NCBI GenBank assembly: GCA_943704425.1
Contig: CALSCP010001856.1
Coordinates: 1 to 64,000 of the forward strand
From: Ministeria vibrans ATCC 50519
Lineage: Eukaryota > Protista > Filasterea
Length of the DNA: 64,000 nucleotides
Direction of reading: 5' to 3'
A program made the position numbers and the translations under genes. The notes under the pieces were generated by a model. The model made no database searches. It had not been told where the DNA came from and worked only from the letters and a program-made list of their open reading frames with translations. Positions 10,366-35,343 of the stretch are shown piece by piece. The number at the start of each line of letters is the position of its first letter. Position 1 is the stretch's first letter.

Positions 10366-10605
10366 GCTCTTACAAAGCGCCTTCGAAGAGTCGGGTTGNN
10401 NNNNNNNNCCCCCCCCTCAACTGCAATACCGTGTATCTATGCATGCATGCTGGCTAGAAACCGTCCTGTGTCTCTGTGTCTCTGTGTTCTATCGGCTCTA
10501 TGTCGTGCAACAATGCTCACCCACGCTTTTTTCCTCTTTCTCGCTCTCCACCTTTCCCGCTGGCTTCTTCATTCTTCTGGGGTGCTTTCAACGAGTAGAC
10601 GCAAC

Positions 10606-21200: not shown

Positions 21201-21980
21201 TCATTCGCCTTGAGCGTGCTCTGGCGCTTGCTCATCGACGGTGTCTTCTTCTCGCGCTCCTCCTGCAGCAGCTCGACGCGTCGCGACAGTTGTTGGTTGT
21301 GGAACGTCAGCTGGTCGACTTGTTCGATTGCGCTGAGAATCATAACATACAAGAAAAAGCGATGGGAGAGTGTGTGAGGAGGAAGAAAGAAACAAAGTGA
21401 TACAGAGAGAGACAAAGTGATAGAGAAAGAGAGAGAGAGAAGAGGAGGGAGAAAGAAACAAAGAGATACAGAGAGAGAGACAAAGTGATAGAGAAAGAGA
21501 GAGAGAGAAGAGGAGGGAGAAAGAAACAAGGAGAAAGTGAGAGAGACAAAGTGAGAGAGAGAGAGAATCCATCGGGGTTTGCGGAGGAATAAACACGACA
21601 GCACGGTCGTCACCATGCCTAGGTATGCATATAGAGCAGGTGGAAACACCTTGATCGGGGAGAGAGGGGAGTGGGGAGACGAGAGAGAGACAAAACACAC
21701 ATCTTTCTTTTGCACCGACACCAAAAATCACACACAGACAGACAGGGATAGACTTTATTCTTTCGCCGTACGTTCGAGCAGCCTCCTCCTTGAGCTGGAG
21801 AGCCGCCTTGGCCTCGAGATAGTTGTTCTGCTCGTTGACTACGGCCTTTTTCAAGACGCCGTTCTGCTGCTTCACTTTGGCATATTCCTGCGCAAGGCGC
21901 TGATACCGCTGCAGCAACGCCTCCGGTGTAAGCTTGCCTGGATCTACCGGAGCCGGCGAAGACCCAGCAGGAGCGCTCAT
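18259..21980 (-). CDS. PPP1R21: Protein phosphatase 1 regulatory subunit 21 (KLRAQ1, FERRY subunit), multi-exon
   Basis: YQRLAQEYAKVKQQNGVLKKAVVNEQ (KLRAQ motif); DQLTFHNQQLSRRVELLQEE; EREKWMLECQLL; TTSRSYGDQIQLMTEH (TTKRSYEDQ motif). Confidence 0.92.
21385..21560. repeat. Intronic (GA)n-ACAAAGTGATA minisatellite in PPP1R21
   Basis: Repeated acaaagtgatagaga units. Confidence 0.8.
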
Positions 21981-22296
21981 ATCGCAAAAAAGGGTTTTCA
22001 ATATATAAATGGGCTAATACTCACTTTTTTTCGATCATATTTCAATGCACAATTGCACATTGCACAATAAATGGCACATTCACTCTTGCACACGCGGCAC
22101 TTGTCAGCTCAACGGCTTGGATCATACACTACACACACCAATAACACCATGCACGCACCGATCGTCTTTCGTTTCATAGAGATACGAGTCGTGCATTTCT
22201 GTTCAAAAGTTTAAACTGTTGTACTCTCTTCCACACCACTCTTTCAAAAACAAACAACAGCAAGAAAGAGAAAAAAATTAAACTTTAGAGTGTTCC

Positions 22297-25200
22297 TCAC
22301 GCAAGTGGGCAGCTTGTGTGGTACTCGTCAGTCGACACAGGCGACGACAAGTCGAGTTGTTGCGTCTTGAACGCACCACTAATAATGACATTCTCAATGC
22401 ATCCCACAAAGGCGTTTCCACCCCCAGAGGTCTTGCCAATGGTGAAGGGACCCGTAGCCTGAACAGCAACCTATATATCGCAACGAACGCGTGTGTGAGA
22501 AGAAGACGAGCGATGCTGCAAACATCCAAATGTCAATCAATGTTCTACCTGACCGCCCGGAGCCTTGCCCGTCTTGACTTGTCCGTCGACAAAGAGTGCT
22601 CCATTCACACCACTGCGCGTGGCAACAATGCGATGGAACTTGTTGTCAAGCACACTAATGGAAGTCACAGTAATGAGAGCATCCTACAAACGAAAAAGAG
22701 AAATAAACTAAGCCCGCGAAAAAAAAATGGTAATTTGCCCTTACTCCACCGCCATTGTTAAAGGAGAACTCAACAAAGCCACCTGCAGAGATGGAAACCT
22801 TGAGGAAATCCTTGTCAGGGTTGGACTGGGACGAATCCTGGCCCTGGTAAAGAACGACACCACTGGAGAGGGCGCGCGCACGAAACGACAGAGTGCTCTC
22901 GACGCCCGGTTTGAGCGTGGCATACGTTGCGAAGGACTTGGCCGAGCTGAGAGCACCTACCGAGCTACTGGGCTCGCTGTAGTCCACGTTGACAATTGTC
23001 AGTCCAACCGTGTCTACATCATTCGTAAGAACGAGTGAGTACAAATTATACGCCCATTTTCTGCGTCTACATGTAATTTTATCTACTTATACCTTCCGCA
23101 AAGTCAATGAGCATGTCGTCAATGATAAGATTGCGCAGAGAACCAACAAGTCCGTTATTGTTGGTGCCGCCCTACAATACGCGTGGAGAAAGAGAAAAGG
23201 TAAGCGAGGTGCGCACGTACAATTTGAGAGTGCTTCGAATTCGTACGAGTCCACCAACCCACAGAGGTGAATTGTGCACATGAAGACCGACACTGGTGCC
23301 GGGGGTGGTTGTTGAGCCCTGGAGCACACCTAAAAAGCAATAGTCCGTATCAATGAATGTTTTTTTTTTCTTCTTTTTTTCTCCTTTTTTTTGAATCGGG
23401 GTGGGGCTGAGTGACATACCGTCGACGTAGAGAGTGCTGGACTGAAGGCTACGAGCCCAGGCAAACGAGTGAAACTTGCCATTGTTGACCGCAGAAGTGG
23501 ATGAAACGGTCGCCGAGCCACGTCCCAACTGTAGACAGACATGTGCAACATATTGAGTAAAATTGCTATTTAATTGCTATTGGACACGATATTTATTCTT
23601 ATATTATTTTCTTACGTCGTAGGTGACTTGGAGTAAGCCCGCAGCGGAAAGCGTTACTGTCACAAACTTTCCACTGAGCGAGTCTGACTGCGACAGGATA
23701 GTCTGCTCTGTGCCTGACACCTGTGCCAGGAACATTCCCTTGATGGTGTTGGACGTGCGTGGTCGCACACCCTGGCCCTCCGCCTTGATGTAGCCATCGC
23801 CAAACATTGTCACCTCATCATCGAACACTGTTGCAGAAACCATTGTAATTATCATTAATATATTATAGTATTATTAAAATTAAAAACTGGACATCAGGGC
23901 GTCATCAGTATTGTTTTAGATTTTGCTTTTGTGGGGAGAGGTTGTTGTGTTGTTACCTTGGTCACAGTATTGACCTGTGAGACCACTTTCGACATCACAG
24001 ACACACTCAAACCCGGCGGGATCAGAGGAGCTTGCGACACACACGCCACTTGAGCAGGGTGACGCAAGACAGAGGGAGGCAAAGGTCGAGACACATCCAA
24101 AGACAATGTTGATCTCCTGCGCATTGTCGGACAAGTCGAGGGTGGTACCGGCGACGACAACATTACTGATGCAGCCAACGTAGTTCATGCCCAGAATCAG
24201 GTTGCCGTCTGTGTTGATCGCCACAAGCGAGCCCACGCGGTTGACTGTGATCACTTCGCTGTCAACCGTGAGTGTTCCAGTCGCTAGATCAAAAGCAAGG
24301 AAGAGACAAATATATTAGTACTTTGCCAATTCGAGTCGATCCAAACAATAGCAAAGACTTTTAAGAAGGTACCGGCTGCGGAGCTGTAGGTAAAAGAGAG
24401 AGTGTGCGACTCGCCGTCGTTGTAGGCGCCAATGGTGGTGGCAGTGGCGGGACCACCGCCGGCGTTGAAGGTGACGGAAATACGGCGATCCGCAATGGCA
24501 ATGGTGAGTTCGTCGTTGTTGGTGGAGTCCGAGTGGAACATTTGGAAGATCAAAGCGTCAACGGAGGACGTAGTAAATGTGAGTGAGACGGTGCCATCGA
24601 CAATTTTCGTGGCGGGGTTCGTCACGTGGAGGGTGCTCTGGGTGTTCTCAAAGTTGAACGTGGCGGCTGCGTGCGCGCCCGGGAGCAGGTTGCACGTGTT
24701 GACACCGTCGCCAGTGTAGTCGGGGAAGCAAGCACAAGTGAAGTCGTTTGCCTCCCAGCCGGTGGGCGTGCAGATGGCCAGGCGATGGCAGGGGTCGGCG
24801 AGGCACGGACTCACGAGAGCCGTCTCGCACGAGAGACCCGTGTAGCCCGAGGGACAGTCGCACGTCATGGACTTGCCGTCGGCGATGCACGAGCCGCCGT
24901 TTTGGCAGGCAGGGGAGCAAGTGGAGCGACGATGACGCCACTGGTTGACCTTTTCCGCGACTGACTTTTCAAGGCTCTCTGTCTTGGTCGAGATGGAGTT
25001 GAGCAGCTGCGAGAAGGTAGACGACGCCGAATCGAGGTGAAGCATGGCGAGTGCCTTGGCAGCGGTCGCCTTGGCTGTGGACACGTCGTCCGAAAACGCA
25101 CCCGACGTCATGTTGACGAAGGAGGCAGTCGCACCCTCGTTGGTCATGCCAATGGCACGACGGACAATGGCACGGCACACGTCGACGGCCGCCGAGGCTT

Positions 25201-26058
25201 TCCAGCCGGTGGTAGGCACGTCGTAGGCACGGAACTCGACTGTGGAGATGGGTGCAATTGACGAGTCGGGCTTGTTGAGCGGAAGCACATGTTGCAAGTT
25301 GAGCGAGTGGTACTTCCACACCTTGGAGTCGTCGATGCCGACGGACGAGGCAAGGTCGCCCAGATGCGAGACAGAATGACGCTGCTCGGCCGAGTCGAAG
25401 CGATGGAACATCTCGGCCAGTTTGGCGTGGTTTCGCTGATCAGCGGGTGTCTTGTCAAGAGCATTGATGAGATCGGGATGCGTCGCAGCAATGGACTTGG
25501 TGAAAGGATTGGCATCGCCACCGTAGTGGGAGGTGCCGAAGAGACGACGCAGCGCCGGCTCGACGGACTCGTGCAGAAGCACCAGGTTAGCAAGTGCCTG
25601 TTCTCCGGCGGCCAACAAGCACGAAGCATCAATGTGCACGTGCATTCCCGAACGATCACCAGACTCGACCAGTCCCGACGACTGCAGTCGATCGACGAGG
25701 CTCTCCAGCTCGTATTGACTCTCCAAGGGAGGCGACACCACTTCGTAGCCGTCGTAGACGCCATTGTTGTTGACGTACTCGGGTGCAATGGTCCATGTGC
25801 GGTTGAAAGTGTCGGTGTAGCGCGTGGTACGCAGACGACGGGGCGCATAGCGTGCCGGGTCAATGGGGTGGGCGACCACAGTGATTTCGTGCTCGAGCGC
25901 TCCCGTCGATTGTCCATCGATCACACTCATGAGCTTCTCGTAGTTGGCAGCAGGCGCCTCGTTGACGTGCTTGATGCGCATACCACTGGACTCGGTACCT
26001 GCGTACTCAAGCTCAACGCCAAACGTGGGCTTGTCTACGAATGAAAAACAGTGAGGTG

Positions 26059-26093
<35 letters not shown>

Positions 26094-26235
26094 GTCTTTT
26101 GAACTTGTCACGACCGTGTGTGTAGGAAATGAAGTGATGCGGCTGCAAGGACTGCTCAAGGAGACCACTGCCAACACCTAAGTTGAAAATTCTCTTTTTT
26201 TGTGTTTCTTGTTGTGTCTGTCGCTCAATGAACAT
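22297..26235 (-). CDS. Multidomain protein: putative amidoligase (Amidoligase_2-like), RHRR furin-type site, EGF x2, LamG, EGF, LamG, LamG; 5' end uncertain
   Basis: Exon 26034-24373 encodes FGVELEY, YEVVSPPL, GMHVHID, KYHSLNL, TVEFR, then RHRR, two 6-Cys EGF domains and the start of LamG; downstream exons give YVGCISNV, an EGF, a second LamG (LYVDG, LWVGG, GSLRNL) and a third LamG (DFLKVSI, LFVDG, FVGCIENV); stop at 22297; no TM seen. Confidence 0.8.
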
Positions 26236-26409
26236 TCAAATTATGTACAGTTGGAACAATAGAGGACCATTCGTATGGTAGCCAAAGAGATTCTGTTTCA
26301 ACTTGTACGTTCGTGTTCATTTCCTAATTTTTTTTGTTCAATTTTTGACACACGCTTTCTCTCTCTCTCCTCTTGTCTGTCTATCTCTCTCGCATCACTT
26401 TCTCTATAT

Positions 26410-29400
26410 TCACTTGTGCCCTCCCTCAAAGATCATAATGTCCTGTCGGCACAGTAGACTTTTTATGGTCTTGGCGCGCATTGCGTTGGTCTCCAGGTAG
26501 TTCTCAAAGAGGCTCTGCTGTGCTGCCAGTACGTCGGGTGTGCCCTCGCCGTTAAGCAGCGTGTCAAAGAGCTGCTCCCACAAGTCGCGCTGCCAGTAAC
26601 GCTTCCATTTGAGCTGCGGTTGCCAGCGGCCCGTCTCGGGGTTCTTCTCCACCTGCATGTAGGAGCGGTGCAACAGCGTATGCACGGTACCCAGCAACCC
26701 GTACGTGTCGCACTCATAGCGCCATGACTCCCCCGTCTGCATCGGCACACACTTGAATGAGCTTGTTTCGCTTTTCCCCGAAAATCGCTGTCCCTCCGGA
26801 TACTGGCGCAAATCAATGGCGCGTCCAAAATCCACCAGACGCAGTCCACGCAGTCGCCAGCCGCCCTCCCCATCCGCGCGCCACGTTCGCTCCCACTCAT
26901 TGCTCAGTCCACTTCCCAGCGTCACATCGTCGCCTGTGCCATCCATCTCGGGCGCTACATCGCTACGCAACAGCAGGTTGTCTGGCTTTATGTCACCGTG
27001 CAAAATGCCCGCCAAGTGCATTTCGCGGCACATCTTGAGCAGCTCAATTGTGTAGAAGATCACAAGAGTCTCTTCCAGCTCACGGCCCGTCTGACTGTAC
27101 AGATTGAGTGCCTTGAGCAGAGTAGGCTGTTCGTGGTAGTCGAGGAGCAACACGCTCGACTGGCCTTCGTTGTAGACGTAGGTTCCATGCATTTGGACAA
27201 ACCACGTGCGCGTGTTGACACGCTCATGCAAAGCACTCAATGCATAAAACTCCCAAGGACACGCGGGGGTCTCTACCTTGGCGGCCAACAGTGCGGGCAT
27301 GCCTCGGCGGCCCCCTCCCACCCCTTGGTCAACGCCTTCTTCGTCGTCATCGTCATCGTCAACGCGCTCGACAAGGTACACGGACGCAAAAGCGCCCGAA
27401 CCAAGCAGACGGTCAAACCGTACCGAGTGGGTGACGTCGAGGGAGAGCGTGTCGCCGCGCGAAGCCCGTTCAAAGAGGGGACCGGGCGTAGTCACGGTGT
27501 GATACAGACTCGACGCGCCCAGGTGTGAATCGACAAGGGTAAGGGTTTTCTTAATGGTACTTGCCAAAAAGGGGTTGGGCTCATCGTCGGACTGGTCTTC
27601 GTCGCCCGATGCAAGCTCATCTCGACGACTTTGATTGTTGCATGGGATGTCGAGGGTGGTGTCGTCAATGCTGTCGCTGGTGCCATTGTCGACGGCATCG
27701 CTTGCTGACGATACCAAGCTAGTGTTGACGCTGCTTCCAAAGCTGCTGTTGCCGTGGGAGTCTTCAACGCTCGTCTCCATAATTGGACTTAACTGTTGAT
27801 GAGTTGAGGCGGGTGTTGGGGTGGCGACAACAGGTGCGGCGCTCGGCGGTAGCACGACTGCAACCGGCGTAGCCGCAATGAAGGATTGTTGCTCGGCCAG
27901 GGACGGCACGGCATTCTCATCGGAGAAGATTGCAAAGGGAGTCGACTGGGCAAAGGGTGCAGTCACCGATAGATTTGCCGATTGGTCTGTTGTCACGTTG
28001 GTATCTTCAAACACGACAAAGTCGTCGGCGGAAGTGGTAGTAGGCGCTGCCATGACGCTGCCATCGTCGTTGTTGTTGTCGTCGAATTCGTTGTCTTCCT
28101 CTTCCTCTTCCTCTTCCTGCTCGACTGGGAACTCGTCAAGCGACTGAAGGGCTGCACGGGACATGGCAAATGAGTGTGCAAGACGTTCAGGAGAGGGCGA
28201 GCCGGGTGGAGGTGTGTTCTCGTCGTCGGGTACGTGCCTCTGTGATTGCTGCGGGGACGCGTTGTCGGCAATGGTGCGATCGAGTGAGAGACGCAAGTGG
28301 GTCGGTCGCTGAGGTGACGACGACGACGACGAAAACTGTACGTTGCTAGTGGCATTGTCAGCTCCATCGTCTTCGTACACCGAGAAGCAGATTGGCTCAG
28401 CCTGAGCCATCTGCTGTCGAGCCGCCATGATGATCCGGGTCGTCTCGCCGTCATCCTCGTAGTAGTCAGCTTCATCGTCGCAACCGTCGTTGTTGTCGTG
28501 GTCGTCGAGGGGCGCAGTGAACATGGAGTTGATGTCAGCCAGTGCTGCCTTCATGTTAATTGTGGGCGACGCTGGTGCATTGACAGAGGCAGCCTCGGCC
28601 GCAGCACTGACGGCGGCGGCAGCAGCACGAATGGCGCCGCAGGGCACCTCAAGTGTGAGAGTGTCGCCCCCGCCGGGTGTTGACGGATCAAAGTTAATTT
28701 GACGCACGAGCGCATTGACTGGGATGGTTGCCATCGATTCGTCGTCGTCGTCACTCATGCATGACTGCACTGCCTTTTGCAGAGTTGCAGCAGCGCGCGC
28801 GCGGATGGCATCTTCTGCATCGGTGCGCGCAAGTCGAGCCTCTTCCGCCTGTTGCGCTGCCAATTCCTCTTGCTCCAGTTCAAGCACACGCTGCGCCTCT
28901 GCCTCAATCTCGGCTGCCAAAGCCGCTTCGCGCGCTGCCTGCTGTTGGCGTGCGAGCATTTCCATGGCACGCAGCTCCTCAAAGCAATACTCAACGTTGG
29001 ACGAGGGAAAGAGCACTTGAGGGTCGTAGCTGCGCGCCTCGTTGGTGACGGCATGGCGCATGGTCGTCACGCCCGCCTTGACACCCGCCAAAGGGTTGAC
29101 ACGTACCGCGCTTTGGGTTTTGGTCGAGGGAGCGAGTGCCCCTTCCAGGCGATGGCGCACGGATGACGACGACGACCCAGTCGCAGTTGCACTACTGGCA
29201 TTGGCGTCGGGCTCGTCTTCAAAGATCTCAAAAGCGGGTCTGGTAGGCACGGGTGCACAGCGTTCGCTGTTTTGCGGTTGAACAGCCGACACGTCTGTCC
29301 AAGTGGTGGGCAACTGGCGGTTCTCCTTGTGTTGCGTGCGGGGCTGGGGGAAGGGAGCTTGAGCGCTGCCGGCAGGGACCACGTCACGCGATGCCGTAGC

Positions 29401-30548
29401 GGGCGCACCCTGACTGTCCTCGTAGACCGTAAAGGCAGGACGCGATACGTTGGGACGCGCGCTGCGCATAGCTTGCGCCTGCGCAAGAGGGCGGGCACTT
29501 GCGTCAAGCAGGCGGCTGCGCGGTTGCTGGCGTGGCAGCTCGGGCACGGCCTGACCGCGCTCGGCCGGCGTCGGAAGGTCACCTCGCTCTGCATCTTGTC
29601 GAATTTTGTCAGCAAGACGATGTTGAAAATCGGCATAGCGACGACGCAGGCGGTCGAGGGGACGGGCTGCGCGTTTATTAATGCCGGCCTGGTAGACCTT
29701 GTCAGCACGACTGTATTGACCGGCCTCCTCGAGAACAGATGCCCACGCCTCGTAAAGCGCCGCATGAGACGTACACAAGTTGTTGGTGTACAGGTAGGTG
29801 AAGATGGCCTGAGGCTCGAGACACTTGCTGGCGTAGTCGAGCCACACGCGCAAGTAGCGTATGTCGTTGTGCCAGCACTCGTCGTCTTTGAATTCGCGCA
29901 CGCACCGCTCGAGCAATTCGAACAGTCCCGAGCCTTCCTCGTCGCCCACGTAGTTTTGCTTTGTCCAGCTGATGTACTTTTCCCACATTTCCATAGGATC
30001 GTCACTCTCAGTGTCGCGCAGGGCTCGTTCAAATTCGCTACAAGACATGAAAAAATGATGAGCGAGAGATAGAGAGAGAGAGAGACACACACACACACAC
30101 ACATCGCGCTCAAGGGCGCTTGAAACGGCCCCTTTGCTAGCATTTGAATGTGCTGCACGGAGCGTTATGGATGCTACAGCGCTGTGTGGGGCATAAACGA
30201 GGAGTGCAGATTTGAAAAAAAAAAAAGATTGCAAGACATGACAGGAAACGAAGGGCAGAGGACATTTCAAGCTAGTATTCGCCTTGGGACACAATATATG
30301 CTTATGTTCAGATGGCATTACGGCACAGCGGGCACAAGAGGAAGCGAGACGGAAGGGGACAACATTTTTCAAATTTGACTTTTCGTGTGTTTTTATTACC
30401 TGCGCTCGCTGGTGAGCTCTTCAAGGCGCTGCTCCGAGTGAGCTGATTGAGCCAGTGCCGTTGTTAGTGTGGCGACAGTGCGGCCCGTCTTGAGCGGGAT
30501 CACATTCTCCTTCTTCAGCTCCCAGTCGAAGTTCGCCGGCGACGACAT
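26410..30548 (-). CDS. BUB1: Mitotic checkpoint kinase, ancestral MadBub (BUB1/BUBR1), 2 exons
   Basis: Exon 1 DWELKKENVIPLKTGR (KEN1); TPR DDPMEMWEKYISW..NDIRYLRVW; GLEBS EYCFEELRA; CD1 SPTINMK; KARD LSPIMETS; kinase PWEFY, HGDIKPDN, DFGRAIDL. Confidence 0.93.
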
Positions 30549-30842
30549 GATCGATCAAAATAAAGTGAAACTATAATAATAAAAATATTTACTTTTACTA
30601 TTATTTTGATTTTTGATTATTCATTATTCATATTGTAGTGTCTACTGCGAAAGCATTGTGCTGATTTTTGTTTCGTATATAGTCTAAATACAGTAAATAG
30701 TCTTGTTTTGACATTGAGTTATTTGAGTACATCTCTTGATTATCTTATTAATATTAATATTATTATTATTATTATTAAATTTTTATTGTTGTATGTTGTT
30801 GTTGTTGCACAAAATAATATAATTATCACAATAGTATGGCAG

Positions 30843-32227
30843 TCACGTTTTGTCTCCCTTGTCTGGAACGGGAAGCAGCTCGGAACGAATGGAGATGTCG
30901 GTGGGCAGCGGGTGGTCGGCGAGCTCGTCGTCGTCAGCGTAGTGGCGACCGCGGTCGGACAGACTGGCACGGTGGTTGGAGTCGACGGCACACAACACAC
31001 TGTCGCTCGAGAGGGTACTTGGCTCGCGTGTGTTGACAGCAAAGGGCTCGGTCTCGCCGGTTTGCTGGCGGTTGCAAAAGAGACGCCATTCGCGCAGCAG
31101 TGACCGGCTCAAGAGCACTGCAACACACGTCAGAAACCCCATTGAGGGCGCAAGGGCACACTCCATCTTGTGAATGAAGGGAGCAAAAGACGAATGTTAA
31201 ATGAGAAGATGTACATATCACAAACTGCATACCAGTGAGGTGGCAGTGCTGTAGTCCTGCTGAAGCACAGTGAACACCATTCGGTTTAGGAGTGCGGGTC
31301 CTTCGAACAGCGAGAAAACGACAAGCACAAGGAGGGAGCGGCGCACGATGACGAGAAGGCGAGCACGACGCAGTCCCGATTGATACACGCGCAACAACAC
31401 CATGCCATAGAGGGGTAGCAGAGCAATCCAGACGGCAAGGCCAATGGCGTGCTGCGACTGCCGCAGGCCGTCTGTCGTCTCCGTCTGAGTCGGCGGGATC
31501 CAACACCAGATCTGTTGCGTCCGGCCGTACTCGCCGAGAATAACCAGTGCCAGTGTGTGTGCCAATGGAATCGTCCACGCTACGGCGTGTAGCAGGCGAA
31601 GACGACGCATCAAATGATCTTCGGACGCTCCCTCCAGTGCCCTAACACAGAGGAATCAAACACGCGTTTACACCACACACATACACAAACCATATATATA
31701 TATATCAAATAAGTAGCTTACATGTAGAGGACGGCGCCCACATTTCCCACCCAGACGTAGGATGCGATTACGAAATAGTTCAGCGCGATTGCTTGAAGTT
31801 CGCAAAGTTTCATATTGAACGTCGCATCTACAAAGCCAATTAGCCGCCAGAGTCACTTGACTGTCTCTGTCTCTCTCTATCCCTATCTGCCTCACTACTG
31901 TACCGTATCCACCAACAGAAAGAGGAGGCGGCGCCCAGGGAAGGTAAAAGACCGCAGAGGCCAATTCGCAAACCGCCAAAGCCGCAACAACGTGCAATTC
32001 GGCTGTTCTCAGACGCTTAAGCTTGGCAAAGGTCACTAAAATGAACACTAGAAGAAGACGAATGAGAAGGGCCAGACGAGGAGAGAGAGGAGAGGAGAGA
32101 GAGAGACAGAGAGACAAGAAAGAGAGTGCGTACTTGAACCACTGATGGACAACACGGCACTTGTGCACAACAGCCCCATTGCCGCCCCTTTCTCATTGGC
32201 CAGACCAAAATCAGGTTCGTCTGTCAT
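30843..32227 (-). CDS. 7TM GPCR of the cAMP-receptor-like / GPR157-like group, multi-exon
   Basis: SAVLSISGS|VFILVTFAKLKRLR..LAVCEL; HAVAWTIPL; WCWI; LVVFSLFEGPALLNR; APSMGFL. Confidence 0.75.
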
Positions 32228-32398
32228 CTCCAGCTCATACAAGATACTGAGAGGTTTATAAAAATATTATTCTTTTTATTCAATAATCGATAATCATTCA
32301 AAAATTAGGAAGAGTAATTATTATTATTATTGGTATTATTGGCATTATTTTGTTTTGGATTTTGAGCCATTAATTGAAAACATAGAAAATATTGTACA

Positions 32399-33760
<1,362 letters not shown>

Positions 33761-33925
33761 TGAAATAATTTGATTTTTCATTTTTCATTTATCATTATTC
33801 ATTCTTGAGACTTGGAGCATTGTCAATACATTAATAGTCAAGAATGAAGATCTGGTTGATCCAATGTTGCGAAAGGAACTCGATGGTGTTTGTGTATAAG
33901 AGTAGGTTGTATTTGTACTGTTTGG

Positions 33926-34256
33926 TTAGACGTCGGCGATGGTCACGTCAACATCGACACCCGGCTCAATGCTGATCGAGGTGATCTGCTTCACTGTGTC
34001 GGGGCTTGCCGTCAGGTCAATGACACGCTTGAACACACGCATCTCGAATCGGTCCCAGGTCTTGGAACCCTCACCGTTGGGCGTCTTGCGCGTGGTAATG
34101 CGCAGAACCTGCAAAATGAAAAACACACATGAATGAGAAGAGAAACATCTATCATGACTGTAGCAACACAAAGTGTACCTTAGTGGGGATACGCACGGGG
34201 CCACGCACGGGGAGGTCCTTCTCCTTGGATCGCTTGATGAGCTGAGCGCACACTAT

Positions 34257-34297
<41 letters not shown>

Positions 34298-34460
34298 CAA
34301 TACAATACAATGCGTGTCAGGCCCGCTTCCACTCCTTTCGTCGTGTCTCCTTACCGTTCTCGACCTTCTTCATGTTGGCCGACGAAAGCGTAATGCGAAT
34401 GCGGTGCTTCGGCGACTCGTCTTCAAAGCCGGCCTTCTGTGGTTTCTCAGCCAGTGTTGC
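33926..34460 (-). CDS. RPS20: 40S ribosomal protein S20 (uS10); start exon not located
   Basis: HRIRITLSS; GPVRIPTK|[49 protein letters not shown]. Confidence 0.96.
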
Positions 34461-34503
34461 CTGCACGAAGAAAGACCCAAGAGAGACCAAGAGAGTTAGT
34501 TGA

Positions 34504-34537
<34 letters not shown>

Positions 34538-34839
34538 AAAAATGGGACGAAGAAGGAAAGAGTGAGCGATGACACGTTGCATGCCATTGGGGACCGTCCC
34601 ATATCCATCGGCACAGACAAGTCGGTCGACGCCGTGTCTTCACGGCCTCCCTGGCGATCCGTGGCATGCTTCAAATCAATCTCTCGCCGCTACGACCCTC
34701 ACCAGGACCCCCACACCCCAAAGACGCTCCCGTCCCCCCATGCATCGTATAATGCACTCCCTGACACGCAAACGGTACACTCCGGCGCTGGCATGAGCGA
34801 AAAGACAAAAAAAAAAAAAAAAAAAGGGGNNNNNNNNNN

Positions 34840-35343
34840 GAATCAAATGCATCGTCGCAAACGGTTCCCCACTCGCCACAGTACTTGATCTCGAGACGGC
34901 CCTGGTTCGTGCATCACTATTAGTGTCGCACGGTCTCCATGAAGGAAGCCTTTGCACGAGCACACAAGCGCATATACCACCAAGGCAGTGTGCGTACAGT
35001 AGCACAAGGCGCATCCCGTGCTCAGATGAGGACGGGAAGTCCCTTAAACAGCGCAGCAAGGGCCCACGTCTTTTTTTTAAACATTCGTCTTAACGACTCA
35101 AATTGACAGTTGACAGCAAAATATAAATGGGAGTACCAAGCGACAAGGAGGCGCAGAGAGCCGGGGAAGTTGCAAATGGTTGAAAGGAGAAGGAGGAAAG
35201 AGAAGAGCGAGAGCGAAAAAAAAGAAAAAAAAAGAAAAAAAAAAAAGAAAGAGAGAAGGTACAATCGTACCACACTTGGAGGTGACAGGGGCAGCCGAGG
35301 CTATGGCAATAGTGGCCAGAACAAACGTCAGCACAGAGGCCAT
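34840..35343 (-). CDS. 5' fragment of a secreted SRCR (scavenger receptor cysteine-rich) domain protein, truncated by an N-gap
   Basis: Signal peptide MASVLTFVLATIAIASA in exon 35343-35271; exon from 34901 reads GRLEIKYCGEWGTVCDDAFD (SRCR signature); intervening exon structure unclear. Confidence 0.75.

Follow-up and report, generated by a model that had tools for sequence, protein, structure and literature searches.

Enzymes with the fold of glutamine synthetase (GS) and glutamate-cysteine ligase (GCL) are known as ATP-driven ligases of the cytosol. As far as is known, the described Amidoligase_2 proteins of phages, bacteria and fungi are cytosolic and stand alone, and many of them are encoded beside a gene for a GATase-like peptidase or for Aig2. 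The family (PF12224) reportedly comprises glutamine-synthetase-like COOH-NH2 ligases (Iyer, Abhiman, Burroughs and Aravind, 2009, Mol Biosyst 5:1636). Here we analyze a stretch of 64,000 nucleotides from the assembly of Ministeria vibrans ATCC 50519 (contig CALSCP010001856.1), referred to below as the window, which carries on its minus strand a gene for a protein combining an N-terminal Amidoligase_2 domain with EGF and LamG domains. The domain passes the Pfam model and shares the fold and the ExE, E, H, ExR signature with described Amidoligase_2 proteins, but differs from them in belonging to a clade that is exported as a whole, whose members carry a signal peptide and are usually fused to long extracellular repeats. 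With slightly more confidence than doubt, we hold that this is a real and expressed gene of what is apparently a holozoan protist, and that it encodes a secreted ligase-EGF-LamG protein of bacterial derivation whose ligase domain is an enzymatically active carboxylate-amine ligase. The structural part of this statement is solid; the catalytic role as a ligase is predicted by analogy.

The original prediction, made from the sequence alone, had placed the motifs FGVELEY, YEVVSPPL, GMHVHID, KYHSLNL and TVEFR on one exon running in frame into two EGF domains and a LamG domain, and this proved to be correct. All five motifs lie within exon 24373-26034, which is open for 553 codons from 26032 on the minus strand, and hmmscan detects in it Amidoligase_2 (50 bits versus a cut-off of 22, residues 3-290, covering model positions 4-245 of 245), EGF in two stretches (42 bits, residues 372-444) and Laminin_G_2 (24.6 bits versus a cut-off of 22.9, residues 486-550), the latter representing the N-terminal half of the first LamG domain. 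Domain, sequence and fold searches were all run exon by exon on unjoined exons; LamG2 and LamG3, which are spread over small exons, remain below threshold piece by piece as weak Laminin_G matches, and hmmscan recognized no further domain families on any exon of the gene. The ligase domain scores 51.7 bits in a six-frame Amidoligase_2 search of the genome and 0.96 to Amidoligase_2 clusters in a protein-atlas feature search. As the ligase, the EGF domains and the start of LamG1 are situated on a single exon, the ligase-EGF-LamG fusion does not depend on splice prediction.

RNA-seq contigs from four public runs of two studies were aligned to positions 21900-26700. Clean joints in contigs of up to four runs from the two studies document each of the eight introns that separate exons 2 to 10, and the introns downstream of exon 2 are of the GT..AG type and 61-129 nt long. 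The contigs bridge the ligase exon to the downstream exons, so that ligase and EGF-LamG parts are indeed found on one transcript. The eight junctions, together with colinearity to P0001, a homolog from another organism, also bear out the earlier proposal that the downstream exons add an EGF and two LamG domains and end without a transmembrane segment; neither a transmembrane helix nor a hydrophobic C-terminal anchor was found in the window protein. Exons 4-6 align in order to residues 850-973 of P0001, i.e., to its second LamG domain, and the reading frame closes with a TGA at 22299-22297. The complete coding sequence of 3123 nt specifies 1040 amino acids plus the stop codon.

Its beginning was revealed by RNA contig X1 (record 4, depth 13), which runs from 26035 into 56 non-local nucleotides that map uniquely to 35272-35327. 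The donor GT of this distant exon 1, at 35270-35269, is in phase 1 and fits exon 2 exactly, and an in-frame stop lies upstream of the ATG at 35406-35404. The encoded peptide (MASVLTFVLATIAIASAAPVTSKC) has the features of a typical signal peptide and, since RNA joins this exon to exon 2, the 1040-residue protein is predicted to be secreted. An extracellular protein had been proposed before this exon was seen. In contrast, the gene had been thought to extend to 26235, but 26036-26235 belongs to a gene on the plus strand and the true exon 1 is located more than 9 kb away in the present assembly. Paralog C894 possesses a signal-peptide mini-exon (MTHVLVLLATLLSCS) and a phase-1 intron directly ahead of its ligase domain, in the same position as in the window gene, and the L014 homolog has a signal-peptide exon and a phase-1 intron at the matching site.

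An AlphaFold model of the ligase domain, calculated from an alignment of 27 sequences (the window domain, its two paralogs, the L014 homolog and 23 library proteins), reached a mean predicted local distance difference test score of 91.7, and Foldseek matched it to YbdK, bifunctional GshF, γ-glutamylcysteine synthetase and glutamine synthetase, each with a probability of 1.0. Searches of the PDB by sequence, with the single protein or with a profile, returned nothing meaningful, and matches were obtained by fold alone. According to the model, the domain has the catalytic fold of glutamine synthetase and glutamate-cysteine ligase. Conservation across 49 homologs is 80% or higher at about 25 positions, among them E85, E97, H131, E155, E266 and R268, which no eukaryotic member has lost; for E7 and E9 it is 90% or higher across the 27 aligned sequences. 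The signature GxExE; DGxExxxPP; SxxH; ExR is present in the window protein and in both paralogs with its residues invariant or nearly so, and all six eukaryotic rows of the alignment retain the family-invariant residues. By analogy to GCL and GS rather than by superposition, we take the conserved glutamate, histidine and arginine residues to be metal and nucleotide binders. Thus Pfam score, modeled fold and alignment agree with the assignment of the N-terminal domain to Amidoligase_2 with an intact signature.

Two cysteines of this region were also compared among the homologs. Residue 24 of exon 1 (35272-35274), ahead of the first strand, is a cysteine in the window gene, paralog C932, L014 and the Pigoraptor protein P0010, and these same four have a cysteine after the His-bearing strand (exon-2 residue ~138, 'DASC'), where C894 has a glutamine. 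Bacterial relatives have neither of the two. The pair may form a disulfide that is specific to eukaryotes and suits the secretory pathway.

The genome contains exactly three ligase-EGF genes, i.e., the window gene and two paralogs. Paralog C932 (G000:C932:48761-51805; L010:4761-7805, minus strand) combines the ligase with 16 EGF domains in an open reading frame of 1014 residues flanked by N gaps; myosin-motor-like exons are situated just past its upstream N gap. In paralog C894 (G000:C894:38459-47401; L012:2460 onward, plus strand), the ligase is followed by an array of dozens of EGF domains in an open frame of 2980 residues. The organization most similar to that of the window protein is found in P0001, a protein of 1195 residues encoded on a contig with a GC content of 67%, in which the ligase, six EGF domains, a LamG, an EGF and two LamG domains are contained in one open reading frame. 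P0001 is 44-46% identical to the window protein, domain order and exons are colinear, and its three LamG domains are clear (139 bits). The database entry of P0001 is N-terminally truncated, the gene caller having begun at a methionine inside FGMELEY; the true start lies at L014:167-349, where a signal-peptide exon (MGRRNV...RFRC) is followed by an intron of ~75 nt. In proteins of Pigoraptor vietnamica and P. chileana, a signal peptide precedes ligase and EGF, and these are followed by a low-complexity region and a transmembrane helix. The order ligase then EGF is therefore common to the two paralogs and to homologs of at least three other eukaryotes, and EGF, not LamG, is the constant partner of the ligase in eukaryotes.

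In five of the six eukaryotic members, the linker from the ligase to the first EGF domain contains a basic site of the furin/kexin type, whereas P0001 has none. Its variants are RHRR in the window protein, RLRR and RDRR in the paralogs and RKRR and RKKR in Pigoraptor (residues 447-451 of P0002 and 453-457 of P0003), and genes for kexin/furin-type convertases with a P-domain are encoded in the same genome (G000:C257:30365-30625 and C2383:3443-3700). The conservation of this RxRR motif suggests that the ligase may be cut away from the adhesion module.

A HMMER pass over 1.84 billion representative proteins yielded 71 proteins matching the ligase domain, the best of them with 45% identity. A word-index protein search with residues 1-330 of P0001 returned P0001 alone, which reflects a limit of the index and not an absence of relatives. 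The library proteins P0004-P0071 are mostly bacterial and have signal-peptide-like N-termini, and many of them comprise 800-2400 residues. Among the bacterial relatives are proteins of 1300-2400 residues with HHH_3 (ComEA-like) repeats, several of them from metagenome-assembled genomes of Planctomycetota, an 'amidoligase family protein' from Oligoflexia, and short members of 355-430 residues that consist of a signal peptide and the domain. A signal-peptide-like segment shortly ahead of GxExE, as scored by a simple hydrophobicity heuristic, was recognized in 56 of the 64 matches that keep this motif. Several members of the clade score below the Pfam threshold for Amidoligase_2 and would therefore be missed by architecture look-ups.

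In an unrooted IQ-TREE phylogeny, the six eukaryotic rows form one clan (support 100/99), and a larger clan (100/100) unites them with nine planctomycete-type rows to the exclusion of the other 33 bacterial rows. The closest relatives are thus not the cytosolic standalone phage or fungal enzymes that the original prediction had envisaged, but signal-peptide-bearing and often giant multidomain bacterial proteins, which implies that export of the ligase predates its fusion in eukaryotes. Probably, one transfer brought an already exported bacterial ligase into a protist ancestor and was followed by duplication and by fusion to EGF and LamG domains. No GATase-like thiol peptidase or Aig2 cyclotransferase neighbor was found around two bacterial relatives; to the eukaryotic gene, this neighborhood criterion is not applicable.

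In the scenario that we favor, the ligase domain would have been gained by horizontal transfer from a bacterial lineage already exporting it, and the animal-type adhesion modules would have been added after the transfer. The resulting protein is ordered as signal peptide, Amidoligase_2, RHRR linker and EGF-EGF-LamG-EGF-LamG-LamG, lacking a membrane anchor. Its enzyme would use ATP/Mg to turn a carboxylate, most likely in a side chain of the Glu/Asp type or at a C-terminus, into an acyl-phosphate and pass it on to an amine, thereby generating an amide or isopeptide bond. The reaction would take place either in the secretory lumen, which contains ATP, or outside, on the cell surface or in the matrix. 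Where the protein acts would be set by its EGF/LamG part, and cleavage at RxRR by a furin-like protease may free or activate the ligase. If the enzyme is active, the cell surface would be the site of a new enzymatic chemistry in the lineage that led to animals, and the protein would be a clear example of how a bacterial enzyme became part of an adhesion architecture of pre-metazoan age.

Several points weigh against this scenario. The signal peptide of exon 1 was judged by eye, by a hydrophobicity heuristic and by comparison with homologs, and the junction between exons 1 and 2 is known from one contig of one run. The direction of transfer was deduced from the bacterial breadth of the family, the tree having no outgroup root. 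To our knowledge, there is no biochemical activity reported for any Amidoligase_2 member, our literature searches returned nothing on an exported amidoligase clade, and around two bacterial homologs no conserved partner or functional hint was found. Finally, all of the clade is exported, although there is little ATP outside cells and none in the bacterial periplasm; this fits poorly with ligase activity, and the problem of ATP supply is even stronger for the bacterial members than for the eukaryotic ones. For this last reason, three other explanations of the exported domain are retained. A hydrolytic mode of action would require no steady extracellular ATP supply; like the depupylase/deamidase Dop, which shares its fold, the domain would employ a nucleotide as cofactor and cleave or deamidate γ-glutamyl or isopeptide bonds, for example in the matrix or in prey. 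On balance we consider this unlikely. Alternatively, the ligase might work only in the endoplasmic reticulum and Golgi, on its own EGF repeats or on cargo traveling with it, and be removed at RxRR thereafter, leaving an EGF-LamG adhesion protein as mature product. EGF as the sole partner common to all eukaryotic members, RxRR between ligase and EGF in five of six of them and the convertase genes in the genome would all suit such a role, and ATP is present in the secretory lumen, where it serves for example Golgi kinases. However, P0001 lacks RxRR, the bacterial relatives have neither EGF domains nor such a pathway, and no known modification fits. An exclusively intraluminal function seems improbable to us.

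That the domain is catalytically silent and serves, like the GS-fold protein lengsin, for binding or as a structural module would accord with a family whose activity is not known and with the scarcity of extracellular ATP. Against this, ~25 positions, including all presumed metal and phosphate binders, are shared by all three paralogs and show 80% or more conservation among 49 homologs from bacteria to eukaryotes, a pattern that selection on an active site typically leaves. We judge a silent domain to be quite improbable. The fusion might also be an artefact, arising from two adjacent genes, from bacterial contamination or from a chimeric assembly, and the order of the scaffold in this region is probably wrong. 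However, ligase, two EGF domains and half a LamG share one uninterrupted exon, spliced RNA contigs tie this exon to the remainder of a gene with nine GT-AG introns, and the same fusion recurs in two paralogs and in other organisms. Single exon, spliced RNA and the P0001 homolog rule out such an artefact for all practical purposes. Returning to the active, exported ligase as preferred explanation, its most ambitious version would make these proteins the first extracellular ATP-dependent protein ligases of eukaryotes, in which a captured bacterial enzyme attaches γ-glutamyl/isopeptide links or tags to surface or matrix proteins or to prey, in unicellular relatives of animals, and would turn the entire, mostly bacterial clade into a class of exported ligases so far unrecognized. 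We regard this version as doubtful. These proteins raise the question of how an ATP-dependent fold operates in ATP-poor compartments, and the short bacterial members make it tractable. The features of the window gene are compiled in Table 1.

Table 1. Features of the ligase-EGF-LamG gene in the window (residue numbers refer to exon 2 unless P0001 is named).
Feature	Position	Strand	Evidence or remarks
Exon 1	35271..35343	-	ATG 35343-35341; 24 codons plus 1 base, encodes MASVLTFVLATIAIASAAPVTSKC; RNA contig X1
Apparent intron 1	26035..35270	-	9236 nt as assembled; holds other genes and N gap 34830-34839
Exon 2: ligase domain, linker, EGF1, EGF2, N-terminal half of LamG1	24373..26034	-	RNA contigs cover 24373-26035
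Amidoligase_2 / carboxylate-amine ligase catalytic domain (GS-GCL fold, modeled)	25163..26026	-	Conserved E7, E9, E85, E97, H131, E155, E266, R268
RHRR, furin/kexin-type basic site	24926..24937	-	Residues 366-369, just ahead of the first EGF cysteine
EGF1 and EGF2	24701..24919	-	Pfam EGF 42 bits, residues 372-444
Exon 3: C-terminal half of LamG1, then EGF3	23957..24283	-	Joints 24283/24373 and 23827/23957; aligns to P0001 residues 734-829
Exons 4-7: LamG2	23827-23616, 23528-23420, 23329-23247, 23171-23093	-	RNA joints; weak Laminin_G matches
Exons 8-10: LamG3 and C-terminus	23013-22745, 22683-22549, 22470-22297	-	RNA joints; colinear with P0001 residues 1024-1193

The length of intron 1 is exceptional. 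The homologous intron of L014 comprises ~75 nt and that of paralog C894 ~275 nt; in the window, intron 1 contains the MadBub-like gene, an RPS20-like exon, other genes and the last exon of a plus-strand coiled-coil gene. Positions 26126-26256 (plus strand) correspond to this last exon and its 3' untranslated region, the messenger RNA being spliced from 10354; the coding sequence stops with TAA at 26181-26183, a poly-A site is situated near 26249-26256, and the ATG at 26235 falls within this stretch. The coiled-coil gene in turn has a 15.8-kb intron that encloses the ligase gene from exon 2 to exon 10. The splices over these long introns, 10354->26126 (plus strand) and 35271->26034 (minus strand), cross at a poly-T tract of 29 nt (26063-26091), and the far exon of each adjoins a run of N (10399-10408 and 34830-34839, respectively). 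An exchange of blocks 10409-~26062 and ~26092-34829 would shrink both long introns to at most a few hundred bases. Very probably, therefore, intron 1 has been inflated by an error in block order of the scaffold, two blocks having been swapped; otherwise, the genes would be truly interleaved, with introns of 9 and 16 kb as compared to ~60-130 nt elsewhere in the genome. A simple inversion of the middle contig was ruled out as source of the long splices, as the last exon of the coiled-coil gene would then switch strand. A second assembly encoding the open reading frame of 565 residues, with which the block order could be compared, was not found. Under either block order, the messenger RNA carries the signal peptide. 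With the signal-peptide exon the gene model is thus corrected, and the probable scaffold error is flagged. As to the neighboring genes, the poly-A site of the minus-strand MadBub-like gene lies at 26291, tail to tail with and ~35 nt from that of the coiled-coil gene, and the exon encoding an RPS20-like N-terminal segment (HRIRITLSS...) is located at 34352-34470 (minus strand) beside poly-A tracts and an N gap.

The enzyme family and the adhesion modules are each already known. As the original prediction had anticipated, literature searches found no described protein with the ligase-EGF-LamG architecture, nor did they find a description of the exported clade, of the EGF/LamG fusion in holozoan protists or of the conserved convertase site. 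A few holozoan protists fuse the exported ligase to EGF and LamG, domain types that build matrix and adhesion proteins of animals. The nearest relatives of the ligase domain, with 36-42% identity, are proteins from metagenome-assembled genomes of Planctomycetota (RMG07446.1 and MBL4848115.1, annotated as 'helix-hairpin-helix domain-containing protein'). Like the window protein, they begin with a signal peptide and an N-terminal ligase and continue into a long repeat region, but their tails carry HHH_3 repeats in place of EGF and LamG; they are bacterial and lack introns. Glutamate-cysteine ligase, YbdK and glutamine synthetase are 9-14% identical to the window domain, and these enzymes are cytosolic and act on small-molecule substrates. 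The Pup ligase PafA and the depupylase Dop are cytosolic and actinobacterial, PafA like Dop shows no detectable sequence relation to the window domain, and no Pup-like partner was seen here. A preprint on Klebsiella CfmP was set aside as a parallel because CfmP is an ATP-grasp enzyme with a different fold. Transglutaminases, to which the original prediction likened the protein in function, would likewise give rise to extracellular γ-glutamyl isopeptide links, but their fold and chemistry are unrelated, as they are papain-like thiol transamidases for which ATP is not needed; a γ-glutamyl/isopeptide chemistry of the matrix based on the window protein, if real, would be unrelated to both transglutaminase and lysyl oxidase. 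With agrin, perlecan and neurexin, the window protein has in common the alternation of EGF and LamG domains behind a signal peptide, but it lacks their other defining domains, carries an enzyme at its N-terminus and comes from a host that is not an animal. The resemblance to these proteins is one of module type only and not one of orthology.

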